A stretch of 64,000 nucleotides of DNA from Octopus sinensis. Lineage: Eukaryota. This document shows, piece after piece, positions 9,371 through 57,948 of this stretch. The notes beneath the pieces were generated by a model. That model ran no database searches. It saw only the letters and a list, made by a program, of their open reading frames with translations, and had not been told where the DNA came from. How positions within the stretch are numbered: the first letter of the stretch is position 1; every line of letters starts with the position of its first letter. Both the position numbers and the translations under genes were made by a program. Location: the NCBI RefSeq assembly GCF_006345805.1, contig NW_021832126.1, positions 248,001-312,000 of the forward strand, given 5' to 3'.

Positions 9371-9384
9371 AGTCTGGTAAAGAA

Positions 9385-28477: not shown

Positions 28478-30484
28478 TATATGGAAAAATTCTCTTATAC
28501 GCCCAATTCTCAAGCCGGGTCGACCGAAGAACGTCCCCTCCTCCTACAGACCCATTTCACTTCTATGTTCATTTACAAAGATTCTTGAAAAACTAATTCT
28601 CGATTTGATCACCCCTATTCTCCCCCTTACTCATATCCAACATGGCTTCAGGAGTAACTTCTCTACCTCGACACATCTTACCACATTAACCCAGTTTATA
28701 ATGGAAGGTTTTGCAACTAGACCTCATCTCAAATCAATTGTATGCTCACTCGATCTTCAGAAGGCCTTTGATTCGGTCTCTAGAAAGATACTGACCCGAA
28801 AAATATTCGACCTATCGATCGACTCGAACATAAAACTCTGGCTTTCGAATTTCCTCAGCGGAAGGAGAGGGCGTGTATGCCTGAATGGAATCAAATCAAT
28901 CTCGAGATTACTTCCAAACGGAGTTCCCCAAGGCTCCCCCTCTCTCCTGCTCTATTTAATTTATACCTATCCGACATTCCTAACCCTGAAATGGAAGACT
29001 CAATCATTCTCGCCTACGCTGACGACCTACTCATTGGATCACGTGACCAAGACCTCTCGAAAGCTTCCAAAAGAACACAAGATCTCTTATTCCAAATTCG
29101 AACTTGGCTATGTCAAAACAGGATGAACATCTCCCCCGAAAAATCGTCCACTACCTTATTTACGTCGTACAAGAGACTTGGAAGCCATACTGTTGATCTT
29201 TTTCTGGACAACGAAAAGATCCCATTCACGAAGAACCCTAAAATCCTGGGGGTCACTTTTGCCACCCACATGTGTTTTACTGCCCATTTAGAGAAGGCCA
29301 TCGGATCCAGTCAGAGAAAAATTGGACTAATCAAATCGATTTTTGGTGGACTAAAGACACCGTTCCCGGCTCTCGGCACTCTCTACAAACAATTCATCGA
29401 ACCAACAATTGGCTATGCCTGCGCAGCTTGAGGTTCTAATCTCTCATGGTCTAACCGCCTTAAAATTGAGACTACACTATGCCGAGCCGCGGCTAGAATA
29501 ACGAAAATTTCCAAACTGAACAACATTACTCCAACTCCGCTTGACCAACTTATTAAGAAAGATGGAAAGGGTTTCTTAGCCATCCAACAAGACCACCTGC
29601 CAAAAAACTTCAAAAATCAGAAGCACATCACCCCAATCCAATTCCTCACAAAAACTGCTCCCGCCCGTCCCGCACTTGCGTTGGGTCCAGAGTCCAACAT
29701 CGGGAAAAGCTGAGAAAGATTTTGAGGATTGTTGGAATCACCCAATTAATTACCCTAATTAACTGTTGGTGATTCTTGGGTTAAAATAAAAAATAAAATT
29801 ATCTTAATTTCTTAATGGCAAACCTAATGCCTAATAAATTATGCCACTTGTGAGCACTCTGTTGATTTACTTTGTGGTGCTCTCTTAATTATTTGCTACA
29901 CTTTAATTTTTTTATAATTGGATTCAGAAGGAATAATTCAGGATATATTTTCTTTTAATGATTTAATTATTTGAAAGTTCATCATTTTTGTGATATTTTT
30001 CGATTTTATTCCTTTAATCTCCTTTTTTACTTATTTATACTGTTTGTGATATTTTTCGATTATTTTCTGTTAATCTCCTTTTTTACTTATTTCTTATTTA
30101 TAATTTTTGTGATATTTTTCGATTTTGTTTCTTTAATCTCCTTTTTCTACATACAAATTTCATGGCCAATTTCGAGAATCTTTTAGACTTTCATCTTTTA
30201 GACTCTAAAAGAACCAATACCTGTAAAAATGAGAAAATGAACTTGCCAGTCAAACAAACATTAACTTTTTAATACAAAATAATCAATAATCCATGATTAA
30301 TCGTGAAAAGCGTTATGTGCCAGCTGCAAGGAACAAACAAAACTAAAATCATTAGTAAAAAGGATATGTTTGATTTTACAAAGAGCAATGTTGCGTAAAT
30401 ATTGATTTTTTCTTCCTAATTTACTTCCTAATATTGAACTAGAAACAAATAACACCAAATTGAAACAAGAAAAATCATCAAACT

Positions 30485-30912
30485 ATGTCCCAATCTGCGG
30501 CATACAATGACGGGTCGGACTCATATACGAGTTTTTCGCAAACATCGTCCCCATATACGATTTTTAAGCATTTTGTGTGCTCATATACGAATCTTTCGCA
30601 AACATCGTCCCCATATACGAATTTTAAGCATTTTGTGTTGCCAAGCACACTCCCATTGAGTACAAAAGTGCTGGCGGATTTCGCCCGCACTAAGCGGTGG
30701 CAAAAACATCTGGGCACCGCATCGACAGGGGACGGGTGTTTTACAATCAGTGGATTGAAAAGCAATTTCAGAAATTCTTTAAAAGGAGCTGAAACATTTC
30801 GAAATTCCGGGCTTTCTGGGTTATATTCATAGGTTCCCGCTTTTATTCCCTTGAAAATTCTTTTAAAATCTATATATTGAACTAAGAAAAATATTATTAA
30901 CAAAGCAAACAT
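30485..30912 (-). pseudogene. Possible Ser/Thr kinase C-lobe tail fragment followed by a 60-bp duplication
   Basis: IFKGIKAGTYEYNPESPEFRNVSAPFKEFLKLL resembles the CAMK-group region before subdomain XI. No catalytic motifs were seen upstream. Confidence 0.3.
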
Positions 30913-32476
30913 TCATTCATATGATTAAAAGGATGAAAGAGATTCATGATTTATTTATTGAACCAGAAAACCACCGTCATAGCCAAAAGAAAGAAGAATT
31001 CAGGTGATCCCAGCCTCCCTCAGCAGTTCGCACAGCCTCTCCCGATGTTCCGCCGTTGTCCCGACGCATTTTCGGTACGGACGGGGATTTTCCGGACGAA
31101 CTTCTCGTAGATGGATTGCAGATGACTTTATGATGTTGTCCCAGGCTTTTGGGATAATCTCTTTATCGGAAAAAGTATTTAGCAGGTTTGCCGCTTTCAA
31201 CCGAATTTTGTCGATTTTTGAATTTGTCTTAATTTAATTTCAAGACAAGATAACGATGCAAACATAAGAAAAATTCCTTTGTTTGATGGAGTCGAAATAA
31301 GAAAATTCAGAGTTCTGGAGGAAGCAAACAATATATATAAGATCCAAAGTGAAGATGGGGAGATAATCGAGGGAGTTCATCATTCCAGATTATTTATATT
31401 AAAATTAATGGATAGGCCTAAATCTAATAATTAAAATTAATGGATAGCCCTAAATTTAATAAAATGTCAAACAAGTTTGCGTTAGCGCAAATTTATACGG
31501 TATGTTGGTTTTATTGAAAGAATTTTATTGGATTTTATCAATTTAATGTTGGCGTTTCATTAACGGCGTGTTTCATTAACCGACCGTGACATTTTCTTTC
31601 ATAAGGCAAATTCAAAGATCGTCGAATTATCCTCTGAGCCACCATAGTCGAACGAGACATTTTTTTGATCCTTTTAGTCCCAACTACTCAAACAAATAAC
31701 AACAAGCAAACTGTGCATATTTAAAAATGTCTCCCTCACATTTTCTGCAGATTCGGCCAGTAATCTCTTCCTTACAAACCTCAGACGCATCTCCAGAGCT
31801 TCGAGACCTATAAATTATATCAGAAAAATGTTAAACAGTCACGTTCTTCCTTAAAGAGAACTACAAAAGAAGATTTGGAGACCTTCAAACATGTGACCAC
31901 ACTGAAAAGTGAGGGTTTTCGTAAAATTTACTTGAGTTCTCCGAAATGATTCAAAAGTGACTCCATTCTGTAAAAATCGGGAATTTCGTAGACCTCAATG
32001 GCCAGGGATATCACGGAATCTTCGCTTGATTTATTATTTGTTATTTTTAATTCGTTTAGTTGGTCTGTGATTTCATTCACTGAAGACTCATCCGTCATTA
32101 GTATGCACCACCAGAATCAAAATATAATAAAATGTTAATTGATCATTTTAAAATATTAATGATTTAATTTCAATAAAAATAACATTTCAATAGCTTTTGA
32201 GATTAGTTTCTTAAATATTTAATAATCCTTATTGTTTCAAAATTTCCTAAAATCAATTGATTAGTCTACAAATGTCGAAAAAATCAAAGCAAAAAATTCC
32301 GTTTTATTTCCGCCTATAAAAAAAATATACTACTAACCTACAAGTATGAACATGCACTCACTCAAACTAATCAAAAAATATTTCCAAAAATGTGAAATGA
32401 CAGTCGACATGGCGACAATCAATCAGTCGTCCGGCAACAATTAATATTTAAGCAAAGAGCACGCAACAGGCCAGAA

Positions 32477-32746
32477 ATGTCGGACAAGAAGGCAGTAGTC
32501 AAATATGGAGACATGGGTGAGAATATGCAACAGGATGCCATCGACTGCACCACCAGGGCCATGGAGAAGTACAACGTGGAGAAAGACATTGCCGCCTTTG
32601 TCAAAAAAGAGTTCGACAAAAAATATTCACCCACATGGCACTGCATTGTTGGCCGGAATTTTGGAAGTTATGTAACCCACGAGACCAAACACTTTCTTTA
32701 CTTTTACTGTGGACAAGTCGCTGTCCTTCTGTTCAAGTCAGGGTAA
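32477..32746 (+). CDS. DYNLL: Dynein light chain LC8, intronless, 89 aa
   Basis: MSDKKAVVK...[34 protein letters not shown]...LLFKSG. Confidence 0.98.
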
Positions 32747-33879
32747 TTTTGACAAGCACTAATAACGTTCTGTTTTAGTAAATAAACTTAATTCTAGAAA
32801 AATGTTACTATGACAATATTTAGACCACAAATGGCGTTTTTAATACTCATAAACTCAGAAAATTAGGAAATATTGACAAAAATATTAAATTATCTATCAA
32901 TGACGCCTTTTCCCGGGGAGTAAAAGTTTCCGATGGTGGACTATGTTACTTTTTATTAATAAAACTTGTCTTTTTATTAGTTCGAGGGAGGAATGGGCTT
33001 TCTTTAGTAGTTCTTGGATTGTTTTGGGGTCCTTGATGTCTTTGTTGGCGTGGAAAGTATCTCTGATTTTACGGATGGTGTATTCACTGGTGATAAAAAT
33101 AGGTTAATTAACCGAAAATTATAATCATGGAATCTATTGGCTTCCTTTAAAAGTTGTCTGTACAATAAAAGAGCACACATGACTTATTCGAAAATTTAAT
33201 TTATAGTTTTTAATAAGTATTTTTAATCATCATATTATTAATTAATTATTATATATTAGTGTATCAAAAGATGACTATTAGTTACTAGGGACATAACAAC
33301 AACATAAATGTGGATTTTCAAATTGTTGACCTGAATCTGCTGATAGTCATTCTTGTGACCCATTTCTGTATTCAGCTCACACACTTTTCACAATTTTCCT
33401 TATCACAGTACTCAGAATATATTTCTTGATTTCATTTTTTGAAAATTTTTATAGTTTTTGTAGAACTTTCTGACAATTTTTGCGGGATTTACAGGTCCGT
33501 GTGGTCCGTACAGCACTACGACCACATTTTTTGGAGGTTTGCCCCTTCGCTGGTGAACCACAATTTTATAAAAAAATTCAGTTACTCGCAAATTTCATTA
33601 AATCGCCATTTTTGGCTTGGTCTCAAATTTGGCAAGTATACGAGGTTTGACTGTATTTTGTTTTTAAGAATTCTCAAGTGTTTGTTCTTGCCGTCGAGAT
33701 GTCTGGTTTCTGTGGCAAAATCGATTAGATTAGTAGGAGAATTTCACATTTTAAAGAAAATGTCGACCTCTCTGATTATATGCTTTTCTCTTTCTTGGAA
33801 AACAAATTTAAATTATGCATAAATACTAATTATTTTCGAGTGCCGAATGTCGGGTCCATTTAGTATATTTATCATTTAG

Positions 33880-34200
33880 TGCCCTGCATATGGGATTCAT
33901 CACAAATACAAAGATCTGCGTAAACAGAGTGTCTCCTTGCAATATTACCTTCGGAATTTTCACTTTCCAATATCCCTTTGTTTAAGTTTTATCTTGACTA
34001 TCCAATTTGTAACAAGATCTTAATAAAGTCTGAATCAACAACTTTTTCAGCATTCATAAACGTGGAAAATAATTTAGGTGGTGAATAAAATCTGCTGCTG
34101 ATAAACTCCGTGGAAAGAAGTAAACCTCTTTAGAACCAAGTTGTATACTCTATCAAACCCACTCGGTTTATTATTACTTTCCTTTTTCCACATTTATACG
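33880..34200 (-). mobile_element. Highly degenerate non-LTR RT relic
   Basis: KVILQGDTLFTQIFVFVMNPICRAL resembles the RT QGD motif. Confidence 0.4.
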
Positions 34201-34479
34201 TCTTTTATTCCTGTCGTGTTGATTCATTCTCTTACTTCAGTATAATGATTCTTGTTGGTTTCTTTGTGTCAATTTGCCTAAGACTTTATTTCATTTAATT
34301 TTTATTGTAAGTACACGAAATAAGTGATTATCCACCTCAAGGTATTGGATTCCAGTCGTTTTAAACCGAGTCATCTTCCATTTATTTATTTATTAAATCA
34401 CCAAGACCACGCTAACAACCTAACAAACGTCACGTGATCCCGATGCACTCAACCAGGGACCACGAGCCCAAAGCGAATT

Positions 34480-37400
34480 AAATGACAAGAAAACCGTCTT
34501 TTATTGAGTATGCGCAGTTCAATGATACACGCAAACACTCATTCAGCAGTCTGTACAACTTTTCCAAAATATTCGCCCCCAGTTTATTGAACTAAGACAA
34601 TGACAGGACACAATACGTCATTATATAATTTTGAAATGGAGGATATAAACAGAGGACTCCGACTTTGGATGTGATTCATCAAATCACGTGCCCTTGTGTG
34701 GATGGACTCCTCATCTAGGAAATTGGGAAAACAGCATTTACGGGTGTGATTGCTCATGAGGTAGGACAAATGGGCAACTATTGGCTCCGAAACCATCTGA
34801 ACCATAACCTCGATGATCCCAATGAGACCGTCGTGTGAGACAGAACAGTGCCAATCAATCACATGATATGCCCTGTGCACACTCGTCAATTAAATGCTTA
34901 CCAAACCAGCCAGTCACAGGCGGGATTCCCCAGAACGCAAGCAGACATAGCATGGGCGATCGACCCAGCAGCATCGTCGTAGTAGAGAAGATAAATACAC
35001 TTCCCCACATAAGCACGGGCCTTATAGGGACAGTTCACCCGTGACGCATGCAGATAACCAACGGCAATAAATTTAAGCAGTTGCATATTATTACTGAAGG
35101 GTGAGCAGTGAATACTACTCTTCCAAATTATGGTTTGTCTCCAAAATATAGGAAAATATGCCCCATGCTTTCGGGTCGTATGCAGGGTCATCAATACAAT
35201 TTTCCAGAATATCCATCCCCAAATCCATCCTGTAAGAATGAGTGGAAATATTTAAAACTCGCCGATAAGATTATAAGCACGCCCTGCCACCCGTCTGTAA
35301 TCATAATAAACATCATCCTCAGGATCAAACACGTCCTTTGTGCAGTTGAGGATATCTGCCAGCTTTTTCTTGGTCTCTTCACTCTGTGCCCCATACTTGT
35401 AAATTTTGCAATAACAGCGAATGTAATCAATGGTCTGCAAAATCGAGGTTTCTCCGGGGGTATATCTCATTCTAAGATGCCCACAAAAGGGAAACTGTTT
35501 TAATATCTCAAGAGCAGTGACAAGGCTATATCGTTTTCTGCACAATTTGGCCACCAAAGCAGTACTCGAGTCAGTCGCCCTGTTCAAATTTTTCAATACC
35601 AAGGACTTAAATGAAATGGAAAAATTACATGTTCAGGAGATGGTGTAAGCACAGAAGTGGCAATGCGAGTAATCAGCTTTCGATAGGTCTCAATAAGTGT
35701 CCAATCCGCACAGCTGTCGACCTGAGAATATTGGCGATCCCTATCATGGAACATTCAAATACAAACATCCAGGCCTTTTGTAAGTTGGTTAGCCCCTTGC
35801 TGGTATGATTAATCCAATCGTGGCCTGACAGGATTTGGTTGAAAAGAGTGACCCCCTCTGTCAGCTCGATCAAAAGTTGGAATCCCTAGTCGTACATGCA
35901 AGTGGACACCCACCATGATGTACTGACTGTGCTGCATTGTCGGACGGAAAGGGGTACATCGAATTGTCTCATGGAGAGAAGTCAGACCATTTCTACAAAG
36001 CGTCTCACACTGAAATAAGATGAACAGACTACCTCTTCGAGGGCATTCTTGGAGGAAATAATTCCTTCTTCTACAGATGACAACTTTTGTGAAGCCTTCA
36101 ACACAAAGACCCTCCACGGATTATGGTCAGAATAACGCTCCTCAACATCGGGCAGGAGTTCATTGAATTTGTCAACTGCACCCAATCTCCAACACGCCTC
36201 CAGGGCCTCCAGTCCAAAATATCGCTCATTCTCTCCTTGAGGCAAAAGAGGCTTCCAACGGTTCAATTCTCGTGCAGCACTGACATTATCCACTAACAGT
36301 AAATACCTGATCCACTCCTCTTGAATCATCTTTACTTCTCGGTGTTTCTTTCCCTTGACAGTGCGTGCCTTAATGTCCACCAATGCTTTTTGGAGTCCCT
36401 ACGGCATATCACTACCACACTACCCCATATAGACCAGCTTCTGCAGAGTCGATTCTCCCTGTTAATTTGTAGAGGAGTCCTTCACACGACTCGCGATATG
36501 TCGAGTTGTATAGCCAGTAGGAATAATACAAGTCGTCCTCCCGCAGAACACGGTACATATACAAGAGGGCTTCCTCGATACTCTAATAAGCCAATCATTC
36601 AATAAGACGACAATCACGACAGAGTCCTTTGGAGATATGGACGCGTCGAGTAGTTTATTGGACAAAGCAGAGTCGACTCTGGCAGTGTCGAACATGTTCT
36701 CCAATATAAGCATGGCATCGTAATGCAAGTGGAAATCAGTCCCCAAATGCTGAACACACTTATTATGACAAATAAACTGCAATGGCCAGTGGGTCAAAGT
36801 CGAATCGCACATCAAAGCGTATGTACATTTGGAATAAAGTGCGGATCACATTTGGTTGTATTCCCTTCTGATAAGAATGATATCCACTGCACAAAAAGGA
36901 CTGGGAAATCTCGATTAGTTTCTGCAATACATTCATTGATAACAAACTTGCTTATCCTCGTCTTCAAAACGTCGAAAAACATTAGCAGTCACATTGAGCC
37001 ACAGGCGGTGAGAGAATTCAGGACTGAAGAAACAAAACTTGCCCACTGCATCAAGAAAGACGGAGGTCTGAAACATGGGAACAGTAATTACCAACACTGA
37101 ATTTAAATTCCTTCAATGATGAAATAAAACTGTAGTGATTAGTCAGCAAATCATCAAGTCCTGTCTCTGGATCCCTCATCACTCCATCATTGAACAAAAT
37201 CTCCCCCAAAGGGACATTAGTTGGAATGTCATCCATTACATTGTATGCTCGCTTTAGGACAGAATCCCTCTCATGTGACTTGCTCTCCTGAATGACGGAC
37301 ATGACCGAGGGGAAGGTTGCCAGTTTGGGAGTAACCACCAGAGGCTGATCTTGGCAGCATCTAAGCAGCAACTGCAGACACAGCGGAATCCAGTAATAAG

Positions 37401-40400
37401 TTCCCATCGGTTCCCAGTTTATGTTATTCGTGAAGCAGAACAAACGGGAATAAACGTCCTTTTCATAATGTTGGTCAAAATACTACAAATAAATACAAAT
37501 AGACGACCGCTTGAAATTTAAAGCGAATTTCAGGATCTGAAAACTTCATTCCAACGAGAAAAGCCCCATCCAGGTGGCGGGAGTATTCATCCCGGTTGAA
37601 TGAGGAATCACTGAAACATGGAAATGGACAATACCTATATATGTGGTACACAATATTCATCAATCGAGTAAACAAAGCATTATTCTCGATGTAATGATCT
37701 TCAAAACTCGCCGCTAAATGATCGATGATATCACAGGTATCATCGAGGGGAGGGAATAGTGACTGGGACTGGCTAGACTAATTAAATGAGTAAAGGGGAG
37801 GTCTGACTGCGTTCAATATCCACGTTTCAACAGCATTCAATATCGAAGTCACAATTTTGGTGTCATTTGTCCCTAATATTAGTTCTTGTAGCATAGTTAA
37901 GAATTGTCGCTGGTTTTCGGGATTCATAACTCCACAACGATGCTTGATTATGTGTATAGCAGTCGAAATTAAATCAGTGACTACACACATTCGAATGCAC
38001 CATTACTTGACAGAGCTGAGTGCAACCCTTCGCACTGGAAACGCTGATTATCGATGAAATAAGTGACAAGTCTTCGGGCGCATCGCAATGCCTGAGGCAA
38101 AAATAGATCAGCGTAAGTCGGATAGCACTCCATCCCAATCTTTAGCAAAGATAACGAGTTATATATCACATTGATAGAGGATGTATTCAACCTAGAAATA
38201 AAGACGCCACTCAACATCTCAGTGTTCACGAAGGCATCACTCAAAAACTTGTTGAAGGAATTGTTAAGTGTTTGCAGTTCTTCAAGTTCGTTCCTGATGA
38301 GGACGACTTTTGAGTTGGAAAAGACTTCGGGAAACGTGTTCATCAGTAATCGGACCAAGGCATGGACTGACTTTAACACGACAATCGCCGAGCAATAGCG
38401 AAAGCAGTTTATAATGGCAGGATTTATTGCTCTTAATATTTGTAGAAACTGGGCCTTTTCCTAGAGGGTAGTAGAGTGTGAGAAATACCAAGTGGACAAT
38501 GATGATGGTGAGGACACTCACAATGTAGGCGAACGCGGGCTGAGAGTAACTTGTCTTCTCGGCTTCTGAAATCGCTTCTTCGAACCACTGAACGCATATT
38601 TCGGAAGAAATTGGTGCCATCTTTAGTTCCACGTACACTTTGAGAGAATCCAGACATCGGCTAGACATCAAATCTACAAAATATAACTCAGAACAAACCC
38701 GAATTTTCAGAAGGGTAGGAAAAACGAATCATGTACTTCAGAATTTCGTTGTAATTATGTTTGGGAATATTTCGCGGAGTCGACTACAAGAAATGACAGG
38801 AAAAGTGGACCTGAATTGAATCATCCCGAATCCACCTGATTATCATTTCAATGAGGTCCATCGCCAGTTTCCTGTGCTCCATTGACGTCTATATGTTAAT
38901 TAGGCACATAAAACATTCTTAGACGTTCCAATATTAGAAATCACGCTAACGAAGCCAGGAAACAATCTTCCAATCACAGGATAGAACAATCTCTGATGTC
39001 GGATTATCAGTTGTCTTGAATAAATCACGTGGAAATTACAGAACATGAAGAATCTGTCCTCCATTATACTCTTCGTGCATAAGTTGTTCGATCCATTGGA
39101 ATAAGTAATCCTAATAGTGAATGAAGGCCACGAACGTTGTTTCCTTTATCATTCACCATAATTGGAATTAGCACATCCAAAGCTTCCCGCACAACTGACT
39201 TGCAACCCTGATAATGCGCCTTGATTAGACCATTGCAAATCTTGGCGTGATTACAACTTGAAACTGATTTATTTGTCAGCTTTGTAAATTTGAATTTGGC
39301 AATGCAGTGGGCAAACAGGAGATATCGATAGTACTTGCAGACCAAGTCAATATTCGAACCCGTGTAGTTGAAGAAATCGCAACAATAGTTCAACAACTTC
39401 TTTAGTCGAAAGTCGAGTACACCCAAACCACTGTGGTATAAAGAAATGATAAACCTGATGGTATCCGGGAACTCTTCGTCGTTCTTGGGAGTGCAAAAGT
39501 AGTGATGAGCGTTCTGGATGAGTAGTTTGAGCATTCGTCCAATTGATATTTGGAAAAATGTGGAAAAGGCGCCCGAATGATTTCCATTGAATACCTACAA
39601 GTCAATTAAAAAAGGACAATTCGCAGAAATCTGTCGAAAGGGGAGTTGGTGTAGTCATCACTGCAGCAAGGAGGACCGAACAGTTCAGAAACATTGCCCT
39701 TCTCCATCTCTACTCTGTAGGAGTAGAAAATGACATATTTTAACACCTCGGACATATTTATTACAATAGCACCCTGCCTCGATAGTTGTCATCAATGTGA
39801 TCTTCATTTTTCAACTCTAGAAAACTCTCAAATGCTCTCTTCTTCCACTCGATGGGATATGTCTGACACACTAACCCACAAAAAAGCAACCTCGGGGACG
39901 GTTGTGTTGAGAAATGTTTTGAAAAAGTCAAAAACTCGAAGATAATTGCTTTCGAAGCAGACGAGCATGTCAAACAAAAGTTTAAAGTCATCCCGACGTT
40001 CCCTTGGAGTGTTAGAAACAGCAAATACTGGTAGCAAGGCAAAAGTATTTTGATAAGACTAAGCAAGTCCTTCCAACACAGTGGGTAAAACCACACCTAA
40101 ACCAGTCGACAAATAAGCTTACGAAATTTTTATTTCGAGTTGAAAAATCTGAATTTGTCAATAAACCGGCAAGAGTTTCAAGCTACTAATTGAGGTCATA
40201 AATATACCAAAGGAGGGTGATCAACCACCCACGTGATATTTCGAGATATAACAATTCGAATCAGTTTGAGGATAAAATGAATTGAGTGCCAGGCGCCCTC
40301 CGAATTAATCTGATCGCTGTTGGAATTGTGAACTGAAATCAATGATAATTGACAATTGACAAGTTCGTTGATTCTCCCAGCATAGTCCATAACAATTTTG

Positions 40401-43400
40401 ATTACGTTCTGACACTCTGGGTGTTTAAATGTTTTCTGTCAATACACAAAGACAAACAACCATCATGAAATTCATATGCTGCTGAGAACGAGCGGGGAGA
40501 TCAGTGAGGAGGTAACTGACTGCTTCCGCTGGAAATCTACAAAAAATGTAGCGCAGGGGAATCCTCAGGTTATCACTTTCCTGGACAATATGCCTATCAT
40601 AATTAACCTGGATGAACAGCAAATGTTCAAATTTAAGTACTATTCGGACTAGAACGTCAATAATCGAAGGATTGAGAGTAGATATTTTCCCAATCATTCT
40701 GAACTGTTCAAGGCACCGAGCAAAATTCTTTGAATGTTAAAAAACAGGAACCTCTGTTTCGAAGGGGTAGAATACGGTACTCCTCTGATTAACAATATAG
40801 TCCAACCCCTTTTCTAGAGTTATCTTGGCAGTAAACATCACAATTAAACTATAAAGTGTTTAATCATCGCCTCTGTTATGAAAGAAGGGAAAAGATGGGC
40901 AAGGTTGGTGAAAATCTCAAAGCTGTCGGTATCGGTGGTAAAAACATTATTCATCTTTGAATACTGCTCGTTTATCATGTTTTCCACCACTTTATGGTCG
41001 TAGTTAAAAATCTCGAGATACTAAAAATGACTGATAAATATACCTTTGAAGTGCAATAAAAGGCGCATTCTCGGATCGGCACTTCCTGGTGTACCAAATA
41101 CATGCAAAAGAGTCCAAAAGTCCTGTGCTTGCAAAACTCGGCATTGCTTAAGGCAGAGAGGAATCCTGTCAACTGTTACGTAATCACTACTCAAAAGAGA
41201 TTTGAGACATTCGATATACAGTAGTCATCGGTTAATTGCATATCGGTTAATTGCATAAATCGGTTAATGGCATAAATTCATGTTTAAAACCATAACTTAT
41301 ATGGTTTCCATTGAAAAAATATCGGCTAATTGCATATCGGTTAATTGCATAAATCGGTTAATTGCATACTCTCATTGGGAACATTTACTATTTTTTCTTA
41401 TAAAAATTTTCGCATAATTGCATAATTATAATTTGTAATTTTAAAATTTAATTATTATTACACATGTCATCTTCGTTACGTCGTGATCTTACACTTTCTC
41501 AAAAATTGGAAATAATCAATTTGTTTATTCAAGGAGGTCAAACTCAATCAGCTCTATCTGCAAGATTCAACTGTTCTCAGTCTCAAGTCTCACGGATTTT
41601 GAAGAATAGAGAAGAAATTATGCTATTGGCTGAATCTAATTGCACCAATTTGAGTCGAAAAAGACGACGCGATGGGAAAGAAAAGAACGTAGAAACTGCA
41701 TTGTCCGTTTGGTTTGCTCAAACCAGGACCAAAAATGTACCAATAAATGGTAACATACTAACCCACAAAGCTACTAGCTTTGCTAAAACAATGAAAATGG
41801 ATGACTTTATTCCTACTTCAGGTTGGCTTCAGCGTTGGAAAGAAAGAAACAACATATCATTTAAACGCATTTACGGGGAGAAAAAAGATTCCGATATAAA
41901 TGCTGCTGAATACTGGTGCCAATGGACATTAAAAGATCTTTTAAAAGATTATACACCGGAAAACATTTATAATTGTGATGAAACAGGACTCATATTCCGA
42001 GGTTTACCCGACCGGACACTATCATTTAAAAATGAAATACCGATTGGAAGTAAAAAAATGAAAGATAGAATAACTGTAATGGTATCCTGCAACATGACGG
42101 GTTCGGACAAACACCCATTGATGGTCATTGGGAAAAGAAAGAATCCTAGGTGCTTCAAAGGAATCAAAACACTTCCAGTTAACTACGTTGTCAATAAGGT
42201 AGCATATCAATTTCAGTAGAATTATAGAATGCATGGATGACATCACCCATTTTTAAAAACTGGTTATCATGTGTTAACAAGAAAATGAAAATACAAAAAA
42301 GAAATATAGCCATGGTCCTTGACAATTGTGCTGCGCATCCAAAAGATGCTGGAGAAAATCTATCAAATGTTAAATTGTATTTTATTCCACCAAACACATC
42401 CGCATGCATTCAGCCATGTGATATGGGGATCATAAAAAGTCTAAAGCACAACTACAGATTGGCATTTTTACAAAGAGTGATTGCCGTAATTGATTCAGAC
42501 GATGCCTGTCTCAAATCTGTTGTGAATTCTATCACTCTTTTGGATGCGCTACACATGCTCAAAATGGCTTGGAGGGAAGTCAAAATAGCAACAATTTACA
42601 ACTGTTTCCGTAAGGCTGGATTCCATGAGAAAGTGGGGGAAAATATGTTTAGTGACATTGAATGTGACGAAATAACGATGGATGTTGCTAATGAGGATGA
42701 AGAATGTATCGGAATCATGTCCGATGAAGAAATATGTTTAATGTCAAGAGATATTTCTTGTGAAGACGATGAGGACGATGAAGATCCCATACCCGTGAAA
42801 ACAACCAGTTCGGAAGCTATGGGTGCATGCAGATTAATACGCCAGTTTCTTACTAACAGCGATTTAACAAGTGAAATGGATATGGACAACTTCTATGAAC
42901 TAGAAAAAAGCGTCCTACGCCTTTGCCAGAAGACTAGACAGTCCAAAATTAATGATTTTTTTAAACGTTTTTGATTATTTTCTTTTCTTGACTATTAAAA
43001 AAATTATTGATTTTTATTAAAACATCGGTTAATTGCATATATCGGTTAATTGCATAAGATTTTCCGTGGACAAATGTTATGCAATTAACCGATGTTTACT
43101 GTATTCGTTCATTTCTTTAAATGAGTTCATGGCTGTCAGGCGTTCTTCGGGATCTTCCAAAATGGTAATGACCAGCTCGACACATTTGCGGTGGCTTTCC
43201 AATGAAAAGTCATAAGCACACAAATGAGAAATCCTGGGGAGAAAGAAAATAATTCCCTCCTGCAGGATAATCAAAACTCAAAACAATCAAGCCGACTCGG
43301 ACGTAAAAAGGTTCATTGAATATCCACGTGGGGAGAGAATGAAGACGGTGCACTATTGTGTCCTTATTCTCAACAATTGCATCCATCAAAAGATCAGGCG

Positions 43401-44009
43401 ACTTCAAATAAATCTCCGCAAGCAGACTTTGGCTCTGTTTTGGTCAACTTGACAAATAACCAGTTTGCGAGAACTCGGGTAAACAGAGAAGGCCTCGTGA
43501 ATGAGTGTCTTCATCACCAGCATAAAACTATCGAAATATCTTTTATCCTTTATAGCAGCAGCCTGCGCATTCTGAATAACCAAATGCAAAATATTCTGAC
43601 CAAACATGTCGTTAATGGACGCCTGTAACATTAACTCCCCAAATACAACCACTTCACTTAAATTACCCAACACAAAAAGTAGAGCCTTGACGCACTCCAA
43701 AGAATAGCGAATGGTAAAGTCAGGAATGAAGTTGAGCATGAGGCGGATTCCCCGACAACTGCAGGTGTGATACCGCAAGGACATACCCTCCAAACTTGGA
43801 AGACAGCATGTCTCCAAAACACGAATTGTAACTCTTTTCAAAAAAGTAGACGAAAAAAGACAGTTTAAGAGCCTACAATAATGCCAAATCAAAACCCTCT
43901 CCTTAGAACGACAGACACACGAGGCAGTTTCAATGAGATTGAAAATATAAGACTGCACGGAAGTAAAGAGGGAGTGGTCGAGAGTCAGAGCCTCGAGAAA
44001 CGCATCCAT
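34480..44009 (-). CDS. TRRAP: TRRAP/Tra1, central HEAT and FAT regions only; many micro-introns; one exon interrupted by a Tigger-like element
   Basis: KALLFVLGNLSEVVVFG, EGIIFF...HLCAYDF, KAHYQGCKSVVREALDVLIP, KAWGIF, GYLHASR...KARAYVGKCIYLLYYDD, RARDLMNHIQSRSP and LYRLLNEC match TRRAP blocks in the expected order. Ends are approximate. Confidence 0.85.
41219..43101 (+). mobile_element. Full-length pogo/Tigger element inserted in a TRRAP exon
   Basis: 23-bp TIRs CAGTAGTCATCGGTTAATTGCAT / CAGTAAACATCGGTTAATTGCAT; TA TSD at 41217-41218 and 43102-43103; repeated ATCGGTTAATTGCAT subterminal motifs. Confidence 0.95.
41464..42974 (+). CDS. pogo/Tigger transposase, 493 aa after removing a 29-nt intron (42199-42227)
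   Basis: HTH_psq, CENP-B HTH (SGWLQRWKER), DDD motifs NCDETG / LDNCAAH / QPCDMGII. Splicing the GT...AG intron joins the two ORFs in frame as VVNK-NAWMTS. Confidence 0.88.
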
Positions 44010-44326
44010 CAGCGCACACGTTAACGTTCTACTTAAAGAATGACTTTTGTGCTCCTTTTATTTGTCCGAATTGAATCAGTTAGCCAGTTCTCACAAGAGG
44101 GATTTGTCTCAAAAGTAGCCGAGAGTATTCAGGAAATGGACCAAAGTCGATTTTGGAACATAACAGCCCACATTTGTAGTGAAACAGTATAGAACTGTCC
44201 ATTCTCTGTTAGGCCTCAGTCGTACTACTGCATGATGACGTGTCTAAACTAGTGAGGATATACACGTGAGGGACTGTGATTTAGTCAGGTAGATCCTCCT
44301 CCACGACACACCTCCACCCACTGGAG

Positions 44327-47297
44327 GTGGATGCCAGGATTGCCCACGTCTGCCCCTCCACCAATGATATATGGATAGTGGACAGTGCCCCTCATTCTAC
44401 TCTCCTCAGACTGAAGGACTGCCATTCCCTCAGCACACAGTCCACTCCCTTCAAAATCGACATCCTCCTCCCCCACCCTGAGGACTGTGACACAATGGTG
44501 GCACTGAGTGATATAACACGTGACAATTATGCACGTGTTGGACATGTCTGATTATTATAGTTCATGTTTCTGACTGAGAATGGTGGAGTGACGTGGAGTC
44601 TGCTTAGCACTGATGTCTCTCTCGACAGTTGTGAGTGGAGGGGACACTCCAGTCTGTACTTCCTGAGGGATATTGAAGGTTGTCTGTCCTCAGTCATAAC
44701 TAAGGGGACACCCACCTAATCCTCTGCCGTATAAGGGACATGTGTCGGACTATCACCAACAATGTCACCAGGAATCACTTCCTCATTGGAGGGGCATTTG
44801 CCTACTTTGAAATAGATCAAAGGTATGAGGCATCCTCATAGCAGTACTGCCCACTACACCATTCCACTGTGGAGAGACCACTCGATTGTCCTCCCTCAAT
44901 TCCTTCCCTCCCCTCCTCAGGTTCCCGCCCTCATTTTGTCCTAGAAAGTACTCCACTTTGAGGGGGATGGGGCCAGGATTATATTGGCGGCACTTCAAAG
45001 GGTTGATGACGTCACTGCTAGTTTATATGTGTCTGATTCAAAGGGAAAATACTTCAAGAAAACAGTGACAAATATAATTAGTGAACCCGTCCTTCAATTC
45101 ATTAAAGTAATCATCGGCCATGACTTGCCAGTTGTCGACCACTGTCCTCGTCAATCAACGTGACTCCTCGGGAAACATGTTGACTTTGATATCTACGAAC
45201 ATGGGCAGCACATTTAGGAGGATATCATTAAACCTTCACATAGGAAAGGAGAATGTTCTGAGTAGTCCCGACTGTCCAGGCTTGCTTATTCTCTACGGTT
45301 ATTGCTGTGTGGGGAGGCTGGTAGGAATGAAGGGACCCCACTACGACCCAAACATCCCACATCACGCCTACATATCTACCGATGGGGGAATTAATTTTAA
45401 AAAAGTATATTAATTAATAATTTAGACATCATCATTTCGACCAATAATTGGTTTCCTTGATGGTGGGTCTGTCCTCATTGCAGTGAATGCGACGATTGTT
45501 GGGCAGAGAATTAACACTATTTTGTACTTTTCAATTGCCATTTGAGTTATTCTATCAACTACGGGGAGAGTTGGGAACACAAGGACACTCCTGGAGACAT
45601 TGTCCCTCTCAGATTCGAACAGATTTCTCGTTCTTCCTCAATAAGGTACATTTATTAGGATAATTAGACTCTTTGCATACAATGCCACCAGCAATCGACT
45701 TTTGATCATCACTTTAAATCTCCAAGCTCTATTGGGACGAAAATGCTCACAAAAGGATATATTAAATAATGTATTATATTTTAATAATATATTAATTAAT
45801 AATAAAATTTATATAAAATAGGCTCATGTGGGGACATGTCATTATGGGGTATCCTATCCACTCGTTTATCGACAACCACATCTCCTATGCAGAGTGGCCC
45901 ACCTAATGACCCCAAAATACTGCAACTGCACTGCAGAGGACTACGAGTGGTATAACTAGAATGTAATATCAGTGACTCGTCTCCAATCCTATCAGAATGT
46001 ATTAACAACGTGTCCAAATTCAACTACAATTGCTGGGAAGGAGAACCCATTCGTTCTAATAACGAGTTCCCCTCTTGGTATATTTCAGTATTCGTCTAAT
46101 TCCGGGGAACATGTGCGTGAATGACCAGACCGGGGATATGAATGCCCCTCCCTGTCCTTTCCAGCCCCCTTCCAACGTAAGCATAATCACTTCGGGGTAC
46201 AAATCAGTGTTCAGAGTGCTCGAGCAAGTCAACTTTATGGTACTCCAATATAAGGTGGGTGGGGAGTGCCATGTGGTAGGGGTGGCGGTCCAATATCACG
46301 TGTGTCTGGGATTTTGGGGATGGTTACATTTTGAGGATGGGGGAGGGGTGTTATAGTGTGAGGCATAAGTATGTGGACGGGGGTGACTACTCGGTCGGCG
46401 TGTGTCTCTCACACAGACACCACTCCCTGTGGGTGAATGCCTCGATGGATGTCACAATTATTGGTGAGTGTAGTACTGTGGTAGTGTAGACACACAGTTG
46501 TATGGCAGTCTTGAATATGACAAGGATATTTTTATAAATGAAATGTTTACTGTCCGAGTACACTCCAGTCTACTGAGTGACCACAAGGATGTAAATTCAA
46601 ATGATTTTATTTATAAATATATTTTTAATGATGAGGTGATTAATATACATATATTTTAGTTATTGAATAACTCTATAATCACAGACACGAATACATGTGA
46701 GTATATATATACTACTCCTGGCCAGTATGTAGGTCACGTCACTACTTACTCTCACTACGGGTCTCACTCCAGTGAGTTCGTGGTTAATGTGCACGGAGAG
46801 CCCCGGATATATGAGTTGACGTGCTCTCTGTGTGGTGAGCAACAATTTGTGACCCACCGGAAATATGTGATTGACGACTTGTACCTCCAACTTGCGAATG
46901 TTTGTGATTGGATTGAATTAGTAGTATTTGAAGCCGAATTACTTTCGTGTAGAAATGGATACTACTCGTGGTGGTGTCATTTTGGTTATTAAAATAGACG
47001 AGTCAACCTCCTCCGTATTATTACTTATATTATTTATGGTTGGGGGATGTGAAGAGGGGACTAATGTTGAATTTGGGGAGTAGAGAGTGTGTTTGTGGGG
47101 AATATTCGAGTGGATATTCGTGGAGATATCTCATCTCCGGATTGGTCGTTGCCATTGTGCTGGTTGGAATAATCCTCATATATTTGTTCTACAAGTATAA
47201 TGACTGTTCTATATATAGGAAAACGTGGATATCACGACTAGTGGGTAAAATGAAGCATCCTAAATATTTCGAATATAGGTTAACCACAATAGATTAA
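44327..47297 (+). CDS. VPS10-domain receptor (sortilin/SorCS-like), multi-exon
   Basis: BNR-like repeats (ISTNMGSTF, ISTDGGINF), 10CC-like IPGNMC, PKD-like YIYTTPGQY, transmembrane helix LISGLVVAIVLVGIILIYLF, short tail with a Tyr motif. Start codon not resolved. Confidence 0.8.
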
Positions 47298-48499: not shown

Positions 48500-48690
48500 T
48501 AGGAACTGGAGTCCTCTCCTCGTTCAGGCCAATCTCACTCATCTCTGTCCTATCAAAAATCCTCGAAAAATTTGTCCTGAAATCAATCTACCCTTTCCTC
48601 ACTCTATCAAAGTCACAACATGGCTTCCGTCCGCAGCACTCAACAACTACACACCTATCTTGTCTAACAAGATTCATTGCAACTCCCCTC
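48500..48690 (+). mobile_element. LINE RT N-terminal fragment abutting the satellite
   Basis: SSFRPISLISVLSKILEK...SQHGFRPQHSTTTHL. Confidence 0.85.
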
Positions 48691-51600
48691 CAAATTCAAT
48701 ATGGGACTTTCAAGTTCAAAGTGGGATTTTCCAAATTCAATATGGGATTTCCAAGTTCAAAGTGGGATTTTCCAAATTCAATATGGGATTTCCAAGTTCA
48801 AAGTGGGATTTTCCAAATTCAATATGGGATTTCCAAGTTCAAAGTGGGATTTTCCAAATTCAATATGGGACTTTCAAGTTCAAAGTGGGATTTTCCAAAT
48901 TCAATATGGGATTTCCAAGTTCAAAGTGGGATTTTCCAAATTCAATATGGGATTTCCAAGTTCAAAGTGGGATTTTCCAAATTCAATATGGGATTTCCAA
49001 GTTCAAGTGGGATTTTCCAAATTCAATATGGGACTTTCAAGTTCAAAGTGGGATTTTCCAAATTCAATATGGGATTTCCAAGTTCAAAGTGGGATTTTCC
49101 AATTCAATATGGGATTCCAAGTTCAAAGTGGGATTTTCCAAATTCAATATGGGATTTCCAAGTTCAAAGTGGGATTTTCCAAATTCAATATGGGATTTCC
49201 AAGTCAAAGTGGGATTTTCCAAATTCAATATGGGATTTCCAAGTTCAAAGTGGGATTTTCCAAATTCAATATGGGATTTCCAAGTTCAAGGATTTTCCAA
49301 ATTCAATATGGGATTTCCAAGTTCAAGGATTTTCCAAATTCAATATGGGATTTCCAAGTTCAAGGATTTTCCAAATTCAATATGGGATTTCCAAGTTCAA
49401 GGATTTTCCAAATTCAATATGGGACTTTCAAGTTCAAAGTGGGATTTTCCAAATTCAATATGGGATTTCCAAGTTCAAGGATTTTCCAAATTCAATATGG
49501 GATTTCCAAGTTCAAAGTGGGATTTTCCAAATTCAATATGGGATTTCCAAGTTCAAGGATTTTCCAAATTCAATATGGGATTTCCAAGTTCAAGGATTTT
49601 CCAAATTCAATATGGGATTTCCAAGTTCAAGGATTTTCCAAATTCAATATGGGACTTTCAAGTTCAAAGTGGGATTTTCCAAATTCAATATGGGATTTCC
49701 AAGTTCAAGGATTTTCCAAATTCAATGGGGATTTCCAAGTTCAAAGTGGGATTTTCCAAATTCAATATGGGATTTCCAAGTTCAAGGATTTTCCAAATTC
49801 AATATGGGATTTCCAAGTTCAAGGATTTTCCAATTCAATATGGGATTTCCAAGTTCAAGGATTTTCCAAATTCAATATGGGACTTTCAAGTTCAAAGTGG
49901 GATTTTCCAAATTCAATATGGGATTTCCAAGTTCAAGGATTTTCCAAATTCAATATGGGATTTCCAAGTTCAAGGATTTTCCAAATTCAATATGGGATTT
50001 CCAAGTTCAAGGATTTTCCAAATTCAATATGGGATTTCCAAGTTCAAGGATTTTCCAAATTCATATGGGATTTCCAAGTTCAAGGATTTTCCAAATTCAA
50101 TATGGGATTTCCAAGTTCAAGGATTTTCCAAATTCAATATGGGATTTCCAAGTTCAAGGATTTTCCAAATTCAATATGGACTTTCAAGTTCAAAGTGGGA
50201 TTTTCCAAATTCAATATGGGATTTCCAAGTTCAAAGTGGGATTTTCCAAATTCAATATGGGATTTCAAGTTCAAGGATTTTCCAAATTCAATATGGGATT
50301 TCAAGTTCAAAGTGGGATTTTCCAAATTCAATATGGGATTTCCAAGTTCAAAGTGGGATTTTCCAAATTCAATATGGGATTTCCAAGTTCAAGGATTTTC
50401 CAAATTCAATATGGGATTTCCAAGTTCAAGGATTTTCCAAATTCAATATGGGATTTCCAAGTTCAAGGATTTTCCAAATTCAATATGGGACTTTCAAGTT
50501 CAAAGTGGGATTTTCCAAATTCAATATGGGATTTCCAAGTTCAAGGATTTTCCAAATTCAATATGGGATTTCCAAGTTCAAAGTGGGATTTTCCAATTCA
50601 ATATGGGATTCCAAGTTCAAGGATTTTCCAAATTCAATATGGATTTCCAAGTTCAAGGATTTTCCAAATTCAATATGGGATTTCCAAGTTCAAGGATTTT
50701 CAAATTCAATATGGGACTTTCAAGTTCAAAGTGGGATTTTCCAAATTCAATATGGGATTTCCAAGTTCAAGGATTTTCCAAATTCAATATGGGATTTCCA
50801 AGTTCAAGGATTTTCCAAATTCAATATGGGATTTCCAAGTTCAAGGATTTTCCAAATTCAATATGGGACTTTCAAGTTCAAAGTGGATTTTCCAAATTCA
50901 ATATGGGATTTCCAAGTTCAAGGATTTTCCAAATTCAATATGGGATTTCCAAGTTCAAGGATTTTCCAAATTCAATATGGGATTTCCAAGTTCAAGGATT
51001 TTCCAAATTCAATATGGGATTCCAAGTTCAAGGATTTTCCAAATTCAATATGGGATTTCCAAGTTCAAAGTGGGATTTTCCAAATTCAATATGGGATTTC
51101 CAAGTTCAAAGTGGGATTTTCCAAATTCAATATGGGATTTCCAAGTTCAAGGATTTTCCAAATTCAATATGGGATTTCCAAGTTCAAGGATTTTCAAATT
51201 CAATATGGGATTTCCAAGTTCAAGGATTTTCCAAATTCAATATGGGATTTCCAAGTTCAAGGATTTTCCAAATTCAATATGGGATTTCCAAGTTCAAAGT
51301 GGGATTTTCCAAATTCAATATGGGATTTCCAAGTTCAAAGTGGGATTTTCCAAATTCAATATGGGATTTCCAAGTTCAAAGTGGGATTTTCCAAATTCAA
51401 TATGGGATTTCCAAGTTCAAGGATTTTCCAAATTCAATATGGGATTTCCAAGTTCAAGGATTTTCCAAATTCAATATGGGATTTCCAAGTTCAAGGATTT
51501 TCCAAATTCAATATGGGATTTCCAAGTTCAAGGATTTTCCAAATTCAATATGGATTTCCAAGTTCAAGGATTTTCCAAATTCAATATGGGATTTCCAAGT

Positions 51601-53098
51601 TCAAGGATTTTCCAAATTCAATATGGGATTCCAAGTTCAAAGTGGGATTTTCCAAATTCAATATGGGATTTCCAAGTTCAAGGATTTTCCAAATTCAAAT
51701 GGGATTTCCAAGTTCAAGGATTTTCCAAATTCAATATGGGACTTTCAAGTTCAAAGTGGGATTTTCCAAATTCAATATGGGATTTCCAAGTTCAAGGATT
51801 TTCCAAATTCAATATGGGATTTCCAAGTTCAAGGATTTTCCAAATTCATATGGGATTTCCAAGTTCAAGGATTTTCCAAATTCAATATGGGATTTCCAAG
51901 TTCAAGGATTTTCCAAATTCAATATGGGATTTCCAAGTTCAAGGATTTTCCAAATTCAATATGGGATTTCCAAGTTCAAAGTGGGATTTTCCAAATTCAA
52001 TATGGGATTTCCAAGTTCAAAGTGGGATTTTCCAAATTCAATATGGGATTTCCAAGTTCAAAGTGGGATTTTCCAAATTCAATATGGGATTTCCAAGTTC
52101 AAAGTGGGATTTTCCAATTCAATATGGGATTTCCAAGTTCAAAGTGGGATTTTCCAAATTCAATATGGGATTCCAAGTTCAAAGTGGGATTTTCCAAATT
52201 CAATATGGGATTTCCAAGTTCAAAGTGGGATTTTCCAAATTCAATATGGGATTTCCAAGTTCAAAGTGGGATTTTCCAAATTCAATATGGGATTTCCAAG
52301 TTCAAAGTGGGATTTTCCAAATTCAATATGGGATTTCCAAGTTCAAAGTGGGATTTTCCAAATTCAATATGGGATTTCCAAGTTCAAAGTGGGATTTTCC
52401 AAATTCAATATGGGATTTCCAAGTTCAAAGTGGGATTTTCCAAATTCAATATGGGATTTCCAAGTTCAAGGATTTTCCAAATTCAATATGGGATTCCAAG
52501 TTCAAGATTTTCCAAATTCAATATGGGATTTCCAAGTTCAAAGTGGGATTTTCAAATTCAATATGGGATTTCCAAGTTCAAAGTGGGATTTTCCAAATTC
52601 AATATGGGATTTCCAAGTTCAAGGATTTTCCAAATTCAATATGGGATTTCCAAGTTCAAAGTGGGATTTTCCAAATTCAATATGGGATTCCAAGTTCAAA
52701 GTGGGATTTTCCAAATTCAATATGGGATTTCCAAGTTCAAAGTGGGATTTTCCAAATTCAATATGGGATTTCCAAGTTCAAGGATTTTCCAAATTCAATA
52801 TGGGATTTCCAAGTTCAAGGATTTTCCAAATTCAATATGGGATTTCCAAGTTCAAAGTGGGATTTTCAAATTCAATATGGGATTTCCAAGTTCAAGGATT
52901 TTCCAAATTCAATATGGATTTCCAAGTTCAAGGATTTTCCAAATTCAATATGGGATTTCCAAGTTCAAGGATTTTCCAAATTCAATATGGGATTTCCAAG
53001 TTCAAAGTGGGATTTTCCAAATTCAATATGGGATTTCCAAGTTCAAAGTGGGATTTTCCAAATTCAATATGGGATTTCCAAGTTCAAGGATTTTCAAG
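48689..53098. repeat. About 4.4-kb satellite of 41-bp and 37-bp units
   Basis: Long unit TCCAAATTCAATATGGGATTTCCAAGTTCAAAGTGGGATTT, itself two related 20/21-bp halves. The short unit lacks 4 nt. A minor variant carries GGGACTTTC. Confidence 0.98.
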
Positions 53099-55780: not shown

Positions 55781-55985
55781 TGCTCCCCTTTATAAAATGT
55801 AACAAAAAGTCGTTCAAATCATATAAAGGCGGACTGGCTAATGCAACGGTTCTTGATCGCCTTTATCAAATGAAACAGTTTGGCAATCCCCCAGGCTACA
55901 TATATATCATAAACATAATACTAACTAGTTTATCTGAGTATTTAATTGAGGACATAAAAAAATCATATAAATTTAATGCTAAATA

Positions 55986-57680: not shown

Positions 57681-57948
57681 TCCCATTAACTTTTAATTAT
57701 AAAATACAACTTTTGTTATTAAAATATAAAAATCGGTCGTCAAAAAATCGCAATATGAAAAGTAGCTCGTCAGTAAAAAATATTAGCCTCTCCTGGAGTA
57801 GTGTATTGAAACGTGCTGCAGCCGTTCCTTACGCTTCTAACAGCTCACGCTATTAATAGTTTATCAGGCTATAGGTAATAGTTCATCAGAACAAAATTTG
57901 CACCAGAAAAAATCATTTAATTTAACAATGTACTGATGTAAGGAACAA

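Follow-up and report, generated by a model that had tools for sequence, protein, structure and literature searches.

Can a DNA transposon that has landed in a coding exon be removed from the message with the help of a splice donor carried in its own terminus? This question is raised by a 64,000-nt stretch of DNA deposited under Octopus sinensis (RefSeq assembly GCF_006345805.1, contig NW_021832126.1, forward-strand positions 248,001 to 312,000; hereafter the window, numbered from its first letter), in which a pogo/Tigger-family element lies inside a gene of the Tra1/TRRAP type. An earlier note on this DNA had proposed that a GT in the terminal inverted repeat (TIR) of the element serves as an in-phase splice donor, so that the transposon may remove itself by splicing and an intron may be in the course of being born. 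The anatomy that it described, the phase, the in-frame product and the identity of the host gene all stand, whereas the step from these to self-removal or intron birth is not supported. On our reading, the element is probably a young and possibly heterozygous disruptive insertion, in which the in-phase position of the GT is coincidental.

First of all, the insertion is exonic. The element reads TA, CAGTAGTCATCGGTTAATTGCATA ... TATGCAATTAACCGATGTTTACTG, TA, its 1,883 bp and the duplicated TA of a Tyr codon being as previously described, and when the flanks are joined through a single TA, a 123-codon open reading frame (ORF) is restored across the site, reading ...KEMNEY-IECLKSLL, which is the empty site that had been predicted. 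With the element in place, the allele instead reads ...NEYSKHRLIA followed by a stop; the frame thus ends seven codons into the element and after about 302 of the approximately 2,256 codons of the gene. A TA target-site duplication is one of the marks of the pogo/Tigger class, and a second copy of the family, at a locus that we call L001, is also flanked by TA. The TIRs are 24 nt long and match at 22 of 24 positions, or over 27 nt at 93% once the TA and one flanking base are added; they begin with CAGT, and the family consensus CAGTAAACATCGG is present in the copies at L001 and at another locus, L004. Two instances of the complete terminal pattern are present in the window, where chance would give 0.00, and a 16-nt subterminal motif, ATCGGTTAATTGCATA, matches 12 times (nine of them inside the element) against 0.07 expected; the motif copies are presumed to be binding sites for the transposase. 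The right end can in addition fold on itself, as an inverted-repeat scan finds a 22-nt hairpin (43041-43062 with 43072-43093, 95% complementarity) whose two partners are the terminal repeat and the inverted subterminal motif. This hairpin (43041-43093) might rival pairing between the two ends of the element, or might hide the nearby GT.

The splicing question has to be put in terms of the introns that this genome uses. The window has the hallmarks of a dicyemid mesozoan genome of the Dicyema type, because its GC content (37.0%), its repeat content (about half is derived from transposable elements (TEs), with many LINE-, hAT- and pogo-like ORFs) and its intron length (some 20-30 nt in the genes of the window) match those of Dicyema japonicum, for which pooled specimens from one Octopus sinensis gave a GC content of 36.7%, 48.9% repeats, a mean intron of 38 bp and a heterozygosity of 1.24% (PMC6736024). 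The median dicyemid intron is 27 bp (PMC6543705), and comparably short introns are otherwise known among sequenced animals only from myxozoans (PMC13644364). Long ORFs appear in the window under the standard genetic code only. In the TRRAP-like gene, 29 of the 31 predicted introns are confident, measuring 23-31 nt with a median of 26, and the predicted 25-nt intron that follows the insertion (41190-41166) is typical of local introns in its length and ends. Homology searches of the flanks were uninformative: a protein-database search with the 302-aa upstream TRRAP piece found no homologues of the insertion region, and PDB searches with both pieces flanking the insertion gave nothing meaningful. 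Codon usage was therefore used as exon evidence, and the exon opened by the 25-nt intron scores 0.18 per codon, against 0.20 ± 0.10 for in-frame sequence and -0.01 for the read-through alternative. A minimal-intron model that reads through this intron and takes a 42-nt intron instead is disfavoured by codon usage and by intron norms alike.

In principle, then, the spliceosome could join the GT of the TIR (43099) to the native acceptor (41166), which would remove a 1,934-nt intron born from a pogo element and leave a functional, in-frame TRRAP mRNA. We reproduce the observations from which this idea started: phase 1 is shared by the GT and the native intron, and the proposed junction GAATACA/GATTCCTC (the slash marks the joint) reads E-Y-R-F-L, in frame and short of eight codons, in agreement with the EY-RFLSA product of the earlier note, whereas the native junction would read CTTTTGA/GATTCC. 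Splicing-out of DNA transposons is known from maize Ds/dSpm and from introners, and with a mean of 38 bp against a median of about 27 bp, dicyemid introns must include some longer ones. Several features nevertheless speak against such an intron. First, the TA/CAGT terminus is found at both ends of all copies, and any insertion, in either orientation, therefore presents TACA/GT. Second, a phase match comes easily by chance, as 36% of the 336 exonic TA sites of the gene are in phase with the next acceptor and 7.1% (about one in 14) are both in phase and within 30 nt of it. Third, the TIR donor scores 1.7 bits in a position-weight comparison, tying with the lowest of 29 local donors (1.7-7.6), while the native donor, which scores 5.0, is intact, lies 25 nt from the shared acceptor and should outcompete it. 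Fourth, 1,934 nt is about 70 times the local norm, the roughly 50 predicted introns of three genes in the window measuring 20-56 nt, and the first AG beyond the TIR GT is 106 nt away, so that the donor has no short-range partner. Finally, the 22-nt hairpin starts 5 nt past the donor, and from 43018 onward the TRRAP strand carries AATAAA hexamers. Taken over all of this, the splicing-out hypothesis is unlikely, though not refuted, and we regard the 1,934-nt intron with its functional product as very unlikely. An NCBI 'endosulfine' model at L001 was considered as an example of a long dicyemid intron, but the model looks unreliable and is uninformative.

Nor is the element built like an introner, a class of transposon-derived introns described from Micromonas, Aureococcus, dinoflagellates, fungi and others (PMC9860276, PMC12130899). 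Introners share with the present case a DNA transposon in coding sequence whose terminus could supply a splice site; they are short and non-autonomous, however, with many genic copies, both splice sites and near-precise removal (PMC9860276, PMC12130899), whereas this element is autonomous, has no 3' acceptor, would depend on a neighbouring native intron and has no sampled sibling that can be placed in an exon. Its 3' end reads ...GACTACTG/TA and the last AG lies 77 nt inside, which is why we separate it from introners; splice sites at both boundaries are absent, the three other independent copies sampled show no set of genic copies in the splicing-sense orientation, and its length and signals do not fit those of host introns (1,934 against 20-56 nt, with the lowest donor score). 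A search for family copies lying in exons in the same orientation had been suggested as a check, and none of the three independent copies could be so placed: the flanks of the L001 copy are non-coding, and two others (L003 and L004) lack an intact end, so that their empty sites cannot be rebuilt in what is a small sample. Maize Ds and dSpm alleles offer another parallel, in which exonic transposons are spliced from pre-mRNA imprecisely, sometimes in frame and in a leaky manner. They too involve an exonic DNA transposon with a cryptic donor near its termini, but their donors and acceptors lie in or near the element within a long-intron genome, while here there is a donor only and a spliceosome tuned to 23-31 nt.

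The favoured sequence of events would be that a young, apparently autonomous pogo/Tigger element of the Tc1/mariner superfamily integrated by cut-and-paste at a TA within the TRRAP-like coding exon, antisense to the gene, and so disrupted this allele at the DNA level. The donor-like GT is simply part of the canonical TA/CAGT terminus common to all copies, and its match in phase with an acceptor 27 nt downstream is a coincidence of the kind open to some 7% of the TA sites in the gene. What the assembly caught would be a recent insertion allele, perhaps a heterozygous one or a polymorphism within the pooled population, which is TE-rich and of high heterozygosity; an evolved self-splicing arrangement would have no part in these events. 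The alternatives that the earlier note itself had allowed, heterozygosity of the insertion or a TRRAP copy that is defective, account for the data at least as well as its splicing proposal.

A number of points weigh against this interpretation. If TRRAP is essential and the parasite selfs, a recessive lethal would be purged fast, which argues for tolerance or rescue of the insertion. GTAAAC also serves as the donor of one or more predicted introns nearby, among them a predicted 25-nt intron of MSH4 at 63779, where the earlier note had placed it. Splice-site motifs are generally weak in this lineage (PMC13644364), and the low score of the TIR donor therefore counts for little. Furthermore, the element has diverged by about 1% from its closest sampled relative and carries two left-end changes from the family consensus, so the insertion need not be only a few generations old. 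That the insertion has become fixed or tolerated through repair of the mRNA, be it by the TIR GT with the native acceptor or by SOS splicing, nevertheless seems to us distinctly unlikely.

SOS splicing is a spliceosome-independent route that the earlier note had not considered. It was described in C. elegans and human cells, where it is triggered by the pairing of inverted terminal repeats regardless of their sequence (Zhao et al., Nature 2025; PMC12779559), and it accounts for the removal of Tc1, Tc3 and Tc4 from C. elegans mRNAs that was formerly read as cryptic splicing (PMC12779559). Acting through AKAP17A, CAAP1 and RTCB and directed by the inverted repeats, it would here give rise to varied junctions close to the TIRs, in frame in some cases, and would thus buffer the insertion. 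The locus offers what may be a suitable substrate, an exonic DNA transposon whose ends are predicted to pair in TRRAP-sense RNA: the end-to-end duplex has a predicted energy of -42.9 kcal/mol, against -20.0 ± 4.3 for shuffled sequences (z about -5). As in the known system, a Tc1/mariner-superfamily element with pairing ends sits in an animal coding exon, and Tc1, Tc3, Tc4 and HSMAR2 are removed from 90-100% of host mRNAs (PMC12779559). The TIRs, on the other hand, are short (24 nt with two mismatches, where Tc1 has 54 nt), self-folding of the right end is an alternative to end-to-end pairing, and the host, whose introns are about 26 nt long, is a spiralian, outside the animals in which the process is documented. 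It is also imprecise, and exonic insertions are still purged in spite of it (PMC12779559). TE-less and partly in-frame mRNAs are known for the established cases, and SOS junctions are rarely GU-AG, while the event proposed in the earlier note is a canonical GT-AG one. We consider SOS splicing at this locus unlikely; if the mRNA is rescued at all, it would be a more plausible route than a 1,934-nt intron where the spliceosome is adapted to introns of about 26 nt.

How much the insertion costs depends on the nature of the host gene, whose essentiality is an assumption. The earlier assignment to TRRAP is upheld, with a reservation concerning its C-terminal part. With the element and one TA removed, the gene model is open from the Met at 44009 to a stop near 34481, and a series of minus-strand ORFs is colinear with the Pfam family Tra1_ring (PF20206), the HEAT 'ring' region of Tra1; the spliced model downstream of the insertion matches it with 305.7 bits and E = 8.3e-91, the best stretch covering profile positions 1155-1677. 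In tblastn comparisons with vertebrate TRRAP (3025 residues), colinearity extends over residues 1170-2382, including the FAT region (residues 1976-2382, E = 0.003 to 7e-06), although Pfam FAT is undetected there. The minus-strand ORFs from 26000 to 37100 that reach 40 aa or more contain no Pfam match to FAT, PI3_PI4_kinase or FATC, and the last approximately 600 residues of vertebrate TRRAP have no tblastn match anywhere in the window; the C-terminal PI3K-like pseudokinase and FATC parts expected of TRRAP/Tra1 proteins are thus undetected. The predicted protein is best read as a shortened TRRAP-like HEAT/FAT protein; reduction of an orthologue, a split of the gene or truncation of a copy could each account for this. 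The public sequences compared gave no second instance of the locus, no empty-site allele and no transcript: tblastn of the TRRAP model against the five loci that carry other copies of the transposon (L001-L005) had no match, and no protein identical to the translated TRRAP or transposase ORF, or to the dynein light chain encoded nearby, was found. A reverse-transcriptase fragment suspected of interrupting TRRAP at 33500-34000 is unsupported by Pfam, and there is no nucleotide repeat at that place.

These features bear on a further possibility, namely that the insertion is tolerated because it struck a TRRAP-like copy that is dispensable or in decay, whether a truncated paralogue or a pseudogene. 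The missing FAT, kinase and FATC matches and the limited span of colinearity would fit such a copy, as would the AATAAA signals past the stop at about 34481 and the way in which the gene is boxed in by its neighbours: a VPS10/sortilin-like gene (about 44040-47294, plus strand) starts head-to-head with it, and LYR and dynein-light-chain genes lie directly downstream, at about 33200-32400. Yet the 2,256 codons are open apart from the transposon, the 31 short introns are clean and codon usage is typical, a state not to be expected of a gene long dead, and dicyemid genes are in any case generally shortened and fast-evolving (PMC6736024). Tolerance by a decaying copy appears unlikely. In two other genes of the window, the MSH4-like gene (61741 to at least 63797, minus strand) and the sortilin-like gene (44285-47294, plus strand), the coding sequence is continuous with introns of 20-33 nt plus one of 51 nt; neither contains a transposon, which makes the TRRAP-like gene, with its exonic insertion, the exception in the window.

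The transposase is coded on the plus strand, antisense to the host gene, in two ORFs (41464-42216 and 42228-42971) with Pfam matches to CENP-B_N (5.3e-08), HTH_Tnp_Tc5 (4.6e-14) and DDE_1 (1.8e-10 and 2.3e-28). The Pfam DDE_1 match of the first ORF ends at profile position 51 and that of the second restarts at position 50, and a predicted short intron joins the two into ...VVNK/NAWMTSP..., a seamless abutment in an alignment with homologues. The three catalytic Asp residues, in NCDETG, LDNCAAH and QPCDMG, fall in conserved columns of related transposases, so that the CENP-B/Tc5-type helix-turn-helix (HTH) and the DDE_1 domain with three acidic residues that mark this class are both present. 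The element is apparently intact and autonomous. Its 29-nt GT-AG transposase intron is of the ultra-short type of the host, and the same ORF break, VNYVVNKVAYQFQ followed by a stop, is found in the copy at L003. With Drosophila pogo and human Tigger the family shares the TA duplication, CAGT-type ends, the CENP-B_N, Tc5 HTH and DDE_1 (D,D,D) arrangement and the existence of non-autonomous deletion derivatives; unlike known pogo/Tigger elements, it has a host-style 29-nt intron in the transposase, arrays of a 16-nt subterminal motif and at most 52% identity (38-52%) to non-dicyemid relatives.

An intact transposase also brings DNA-level removal in somatic cells into consideration, either through excision by the element's own enzyme with homologue-templated repair or through programmed chromatin elimination of the kind reported in dicyemids. 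The boundaries are TA, a single TA would restore the ORF, and somatic rearrangement and circular DNAs have been reported for dicyemids (Noto 2003, as presented in PMC6543705). Against this, the circular contigs are mostly 600-800 bp and largely mitochondrial-like, the sole conserved domains among them being those of proteins encoded by mitochondrial DNA (PMC6543705). Nothing points to the elimination of other copies of the element, and nothing connects the reported somatic elimination with this one. Excision of the Tc1/mariner type, moreover, normally leaves footprints. We judge somatic removal to be highly improbable. The internal eliminated sequences (IESs) of Paramecium and other ciliates resemble the insertion in their TA boundaries, TA-YAG-like ends, Tc1/mariner origin and exonic position, and in that precise removal would restore the ORF. 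A ciliate germline IES, with its TA bounds and TAYAG-like ends among tiny introns, was nevertheless rejected as an explanation: the standard genetic code gives long ORFs, the genes and TEs are metazoan and the composition is of the dicyemid type.

The age of the insertion can be approached through its relatives. Five loci (L001-L005), on contigs VCDQ01013470.1, VCDQ01002209.1, VCDQ01003768.1 and VCDQ01013287.1 of GCA_006345805.1, represent three further independent loci beyond the copy in the window, to which the sampled copies are 95.7-98.9% identical. The family thus has multiple dispersed copies including deletion derivatives. The copy at L001 and L002 is an internal-deletion derivative that has lost 680 bp, and its empty site, rebuilt at L001, is non-coding; the L003 copy has damaged ends and adjoins a hAT-like element; and the L004/L005 copy, 98.9% identical, has a truncated right end and a nonsense mutation (Q to stop) in the transposase. 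Over about 1.8 kb, 18 substitutions, an indel of a single base and one copy of the motif separate the window copy from that at L004. This divergence of about 1% is similar to the published allelic heterozygosity of D. japonicum, and the window copy has the only open transposase among the sampled copies. The small divergence and the open transposase indicate a family that is young and probably active. L001 and L002, about 30 kb apart on one contig, have identical copies with identical flanks, as do L004 and L005 on different contigs, a pattern suggestive of haplotypes that the assembly left uncollapsed or of segmental duplications of recent date.

Among protein sequences, the closest relatives of the transposase (94-99% identical) are NCBI entries labelled Octopus sinensis, and those more than 90% identical are all NCBI-annotated copies of this element; the nearest non-dicyemid transposases are 38-52% identical. 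The octopus-labelled contigs with pogo copies carry genes with 22-28-nt GT-AG introns, including an SLC12-like gene, and on account of these introns several contigs of GCA_006345805.1 look like dicyemid parasite DNA within an octopus assembly. The proteins listed as 'tigger transposable element-derived protein 4-like [Octopus sinensis]' would then probably be the parasite's. There is no evidence that the element came by horizontal transfer from the octopus, the octopus-labelled matches being the short-intron dicyemid contigs and the next relatives at most 52% identical. The same contigs share a hAT-like repeat with the window, whose own hAT-like element is 82-86% identical to one at L003. Elsewhere in the window, two more sets of pogo-like ORFs (HTH/DDE_1) are found among TE remains at 18171-18868 (plus strand), 26551-28179 (minus strand), 55960-57853, 1-10000 and 23784-26429, together with several LINE-type reverse-transcriptase ORFs assigned by the appearance of their translations alone. 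A satellite at 48689-53095 (4.4 kb, about 114 copies of a 37-bp unit, 94% matches) is open in three plus-strand frames for some 1,500 codons and so mimics huge ORFs.

Table 1. Coordinates (window numbering) of the transposon, its predicted coding parts and the surrounding features of the host gene; the slash in TAC A/GTAAAC marks the proposed splice boundary.
Feature	Position	Strand	Remarks
pogo/Tigger-family DNA transposon	41219..43101	+	1,883 bp; from the sequence read on both strands and an inverted-repeat scan
Target-site duplication TA, left copy	41217..41218
Target-site duplication TA, right copy	43102..43103		on the minus strand, first two bases of Tyr codon TAC
Left terminal inverted repeat	41219..41242	+	CAGTAGTCATCGGTTAATTGCATA; 2 bases off the family consensus CAGTAAAC...
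Right terminal inverted repeat	43078..43101	-	CAGTAAACATCGGTTAATTGCATA
Six subterminal copies of the 16-nt motif	41227..41368	+	ATCGGTTAATTGCATA; pattern count
Three right-end copies of the 16-nt motif	43024..43093		ATCGGTTAATTGCATA; two direct, one inverted
Insertion junctions and empty site			junctions in the genome AACGAATACAGTAAACATCGG and CCGATGACTACTGTATATCGAATG; empty-site k-mer GAACGAATATATCGAATG
Transposase exon 1 (predicted)	41464..42198	+	CENP-B_N, HTH_Tnp_Tc5 and start of DDE_1, including first catalytic Asp (NCDETG)
Transposase intron (predicted)	42199..42227	+	29 nt, phase 0, GT-AG; GTAGCATATCAATTTCAGTAGAATTATAG
Transposase exon 2 (predicted)	42228..42974	+	remaining DDE_1, second and third catalytic Asp (LDNCAAH, QPCDMG), acidic tail, TGA stop
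Tra1/TRRAP-like host gene	34482..44009	-	about 2,256 codons, 31 predicted introns in the empty-site model
Candidate phase-1 donor GT in right inverted end	43098..43099	-	TAC A/GTAAAC
First in-frame stop of the insertion allele	43077..43079	-	TAA
Remnant of the interrupted exon	41191..41216	-	IECLKSLL and first base of Arg; the 8 codons lost in the proposed splice
Native intron (predicted)	41166..41190	-	25 nt, phase 1, GTAGTG...GACAG; donor at 41190 intact
Next native intron (predicted)	41021..41043	-	23 nt, phase 0

A transposon-hit exon is an ordinary event, yet this one offers a cheap natural test case. Whether a 1.9-kb insert can be removed by a spliceosome that works with weak signals on introns of about 26 nt is of interest for the gain of introns from transposons, and whether SOS splicing extends beyond nematodes and human cells matters for understanding how transposon hits in exons are buffered in animals. 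If the splicing route were true, a 1.9-kb intron would have arisen from an autonomous pogo element in an animal lineage with about the shortest introns known; were SOS splicing at work instead, spiralians would have furnished their first natural example of it, in a gene that is expected to be essential. Two by-products may be of more immediate use than the splicing question. The first is a pogo family of dicyemids that seems to be intact and autonomous and whose transposase gene has a 29-nt intron in the style of the host, and the second is the recognition of contigs and proteins in the octopus assembly that appear to be mislabelled.

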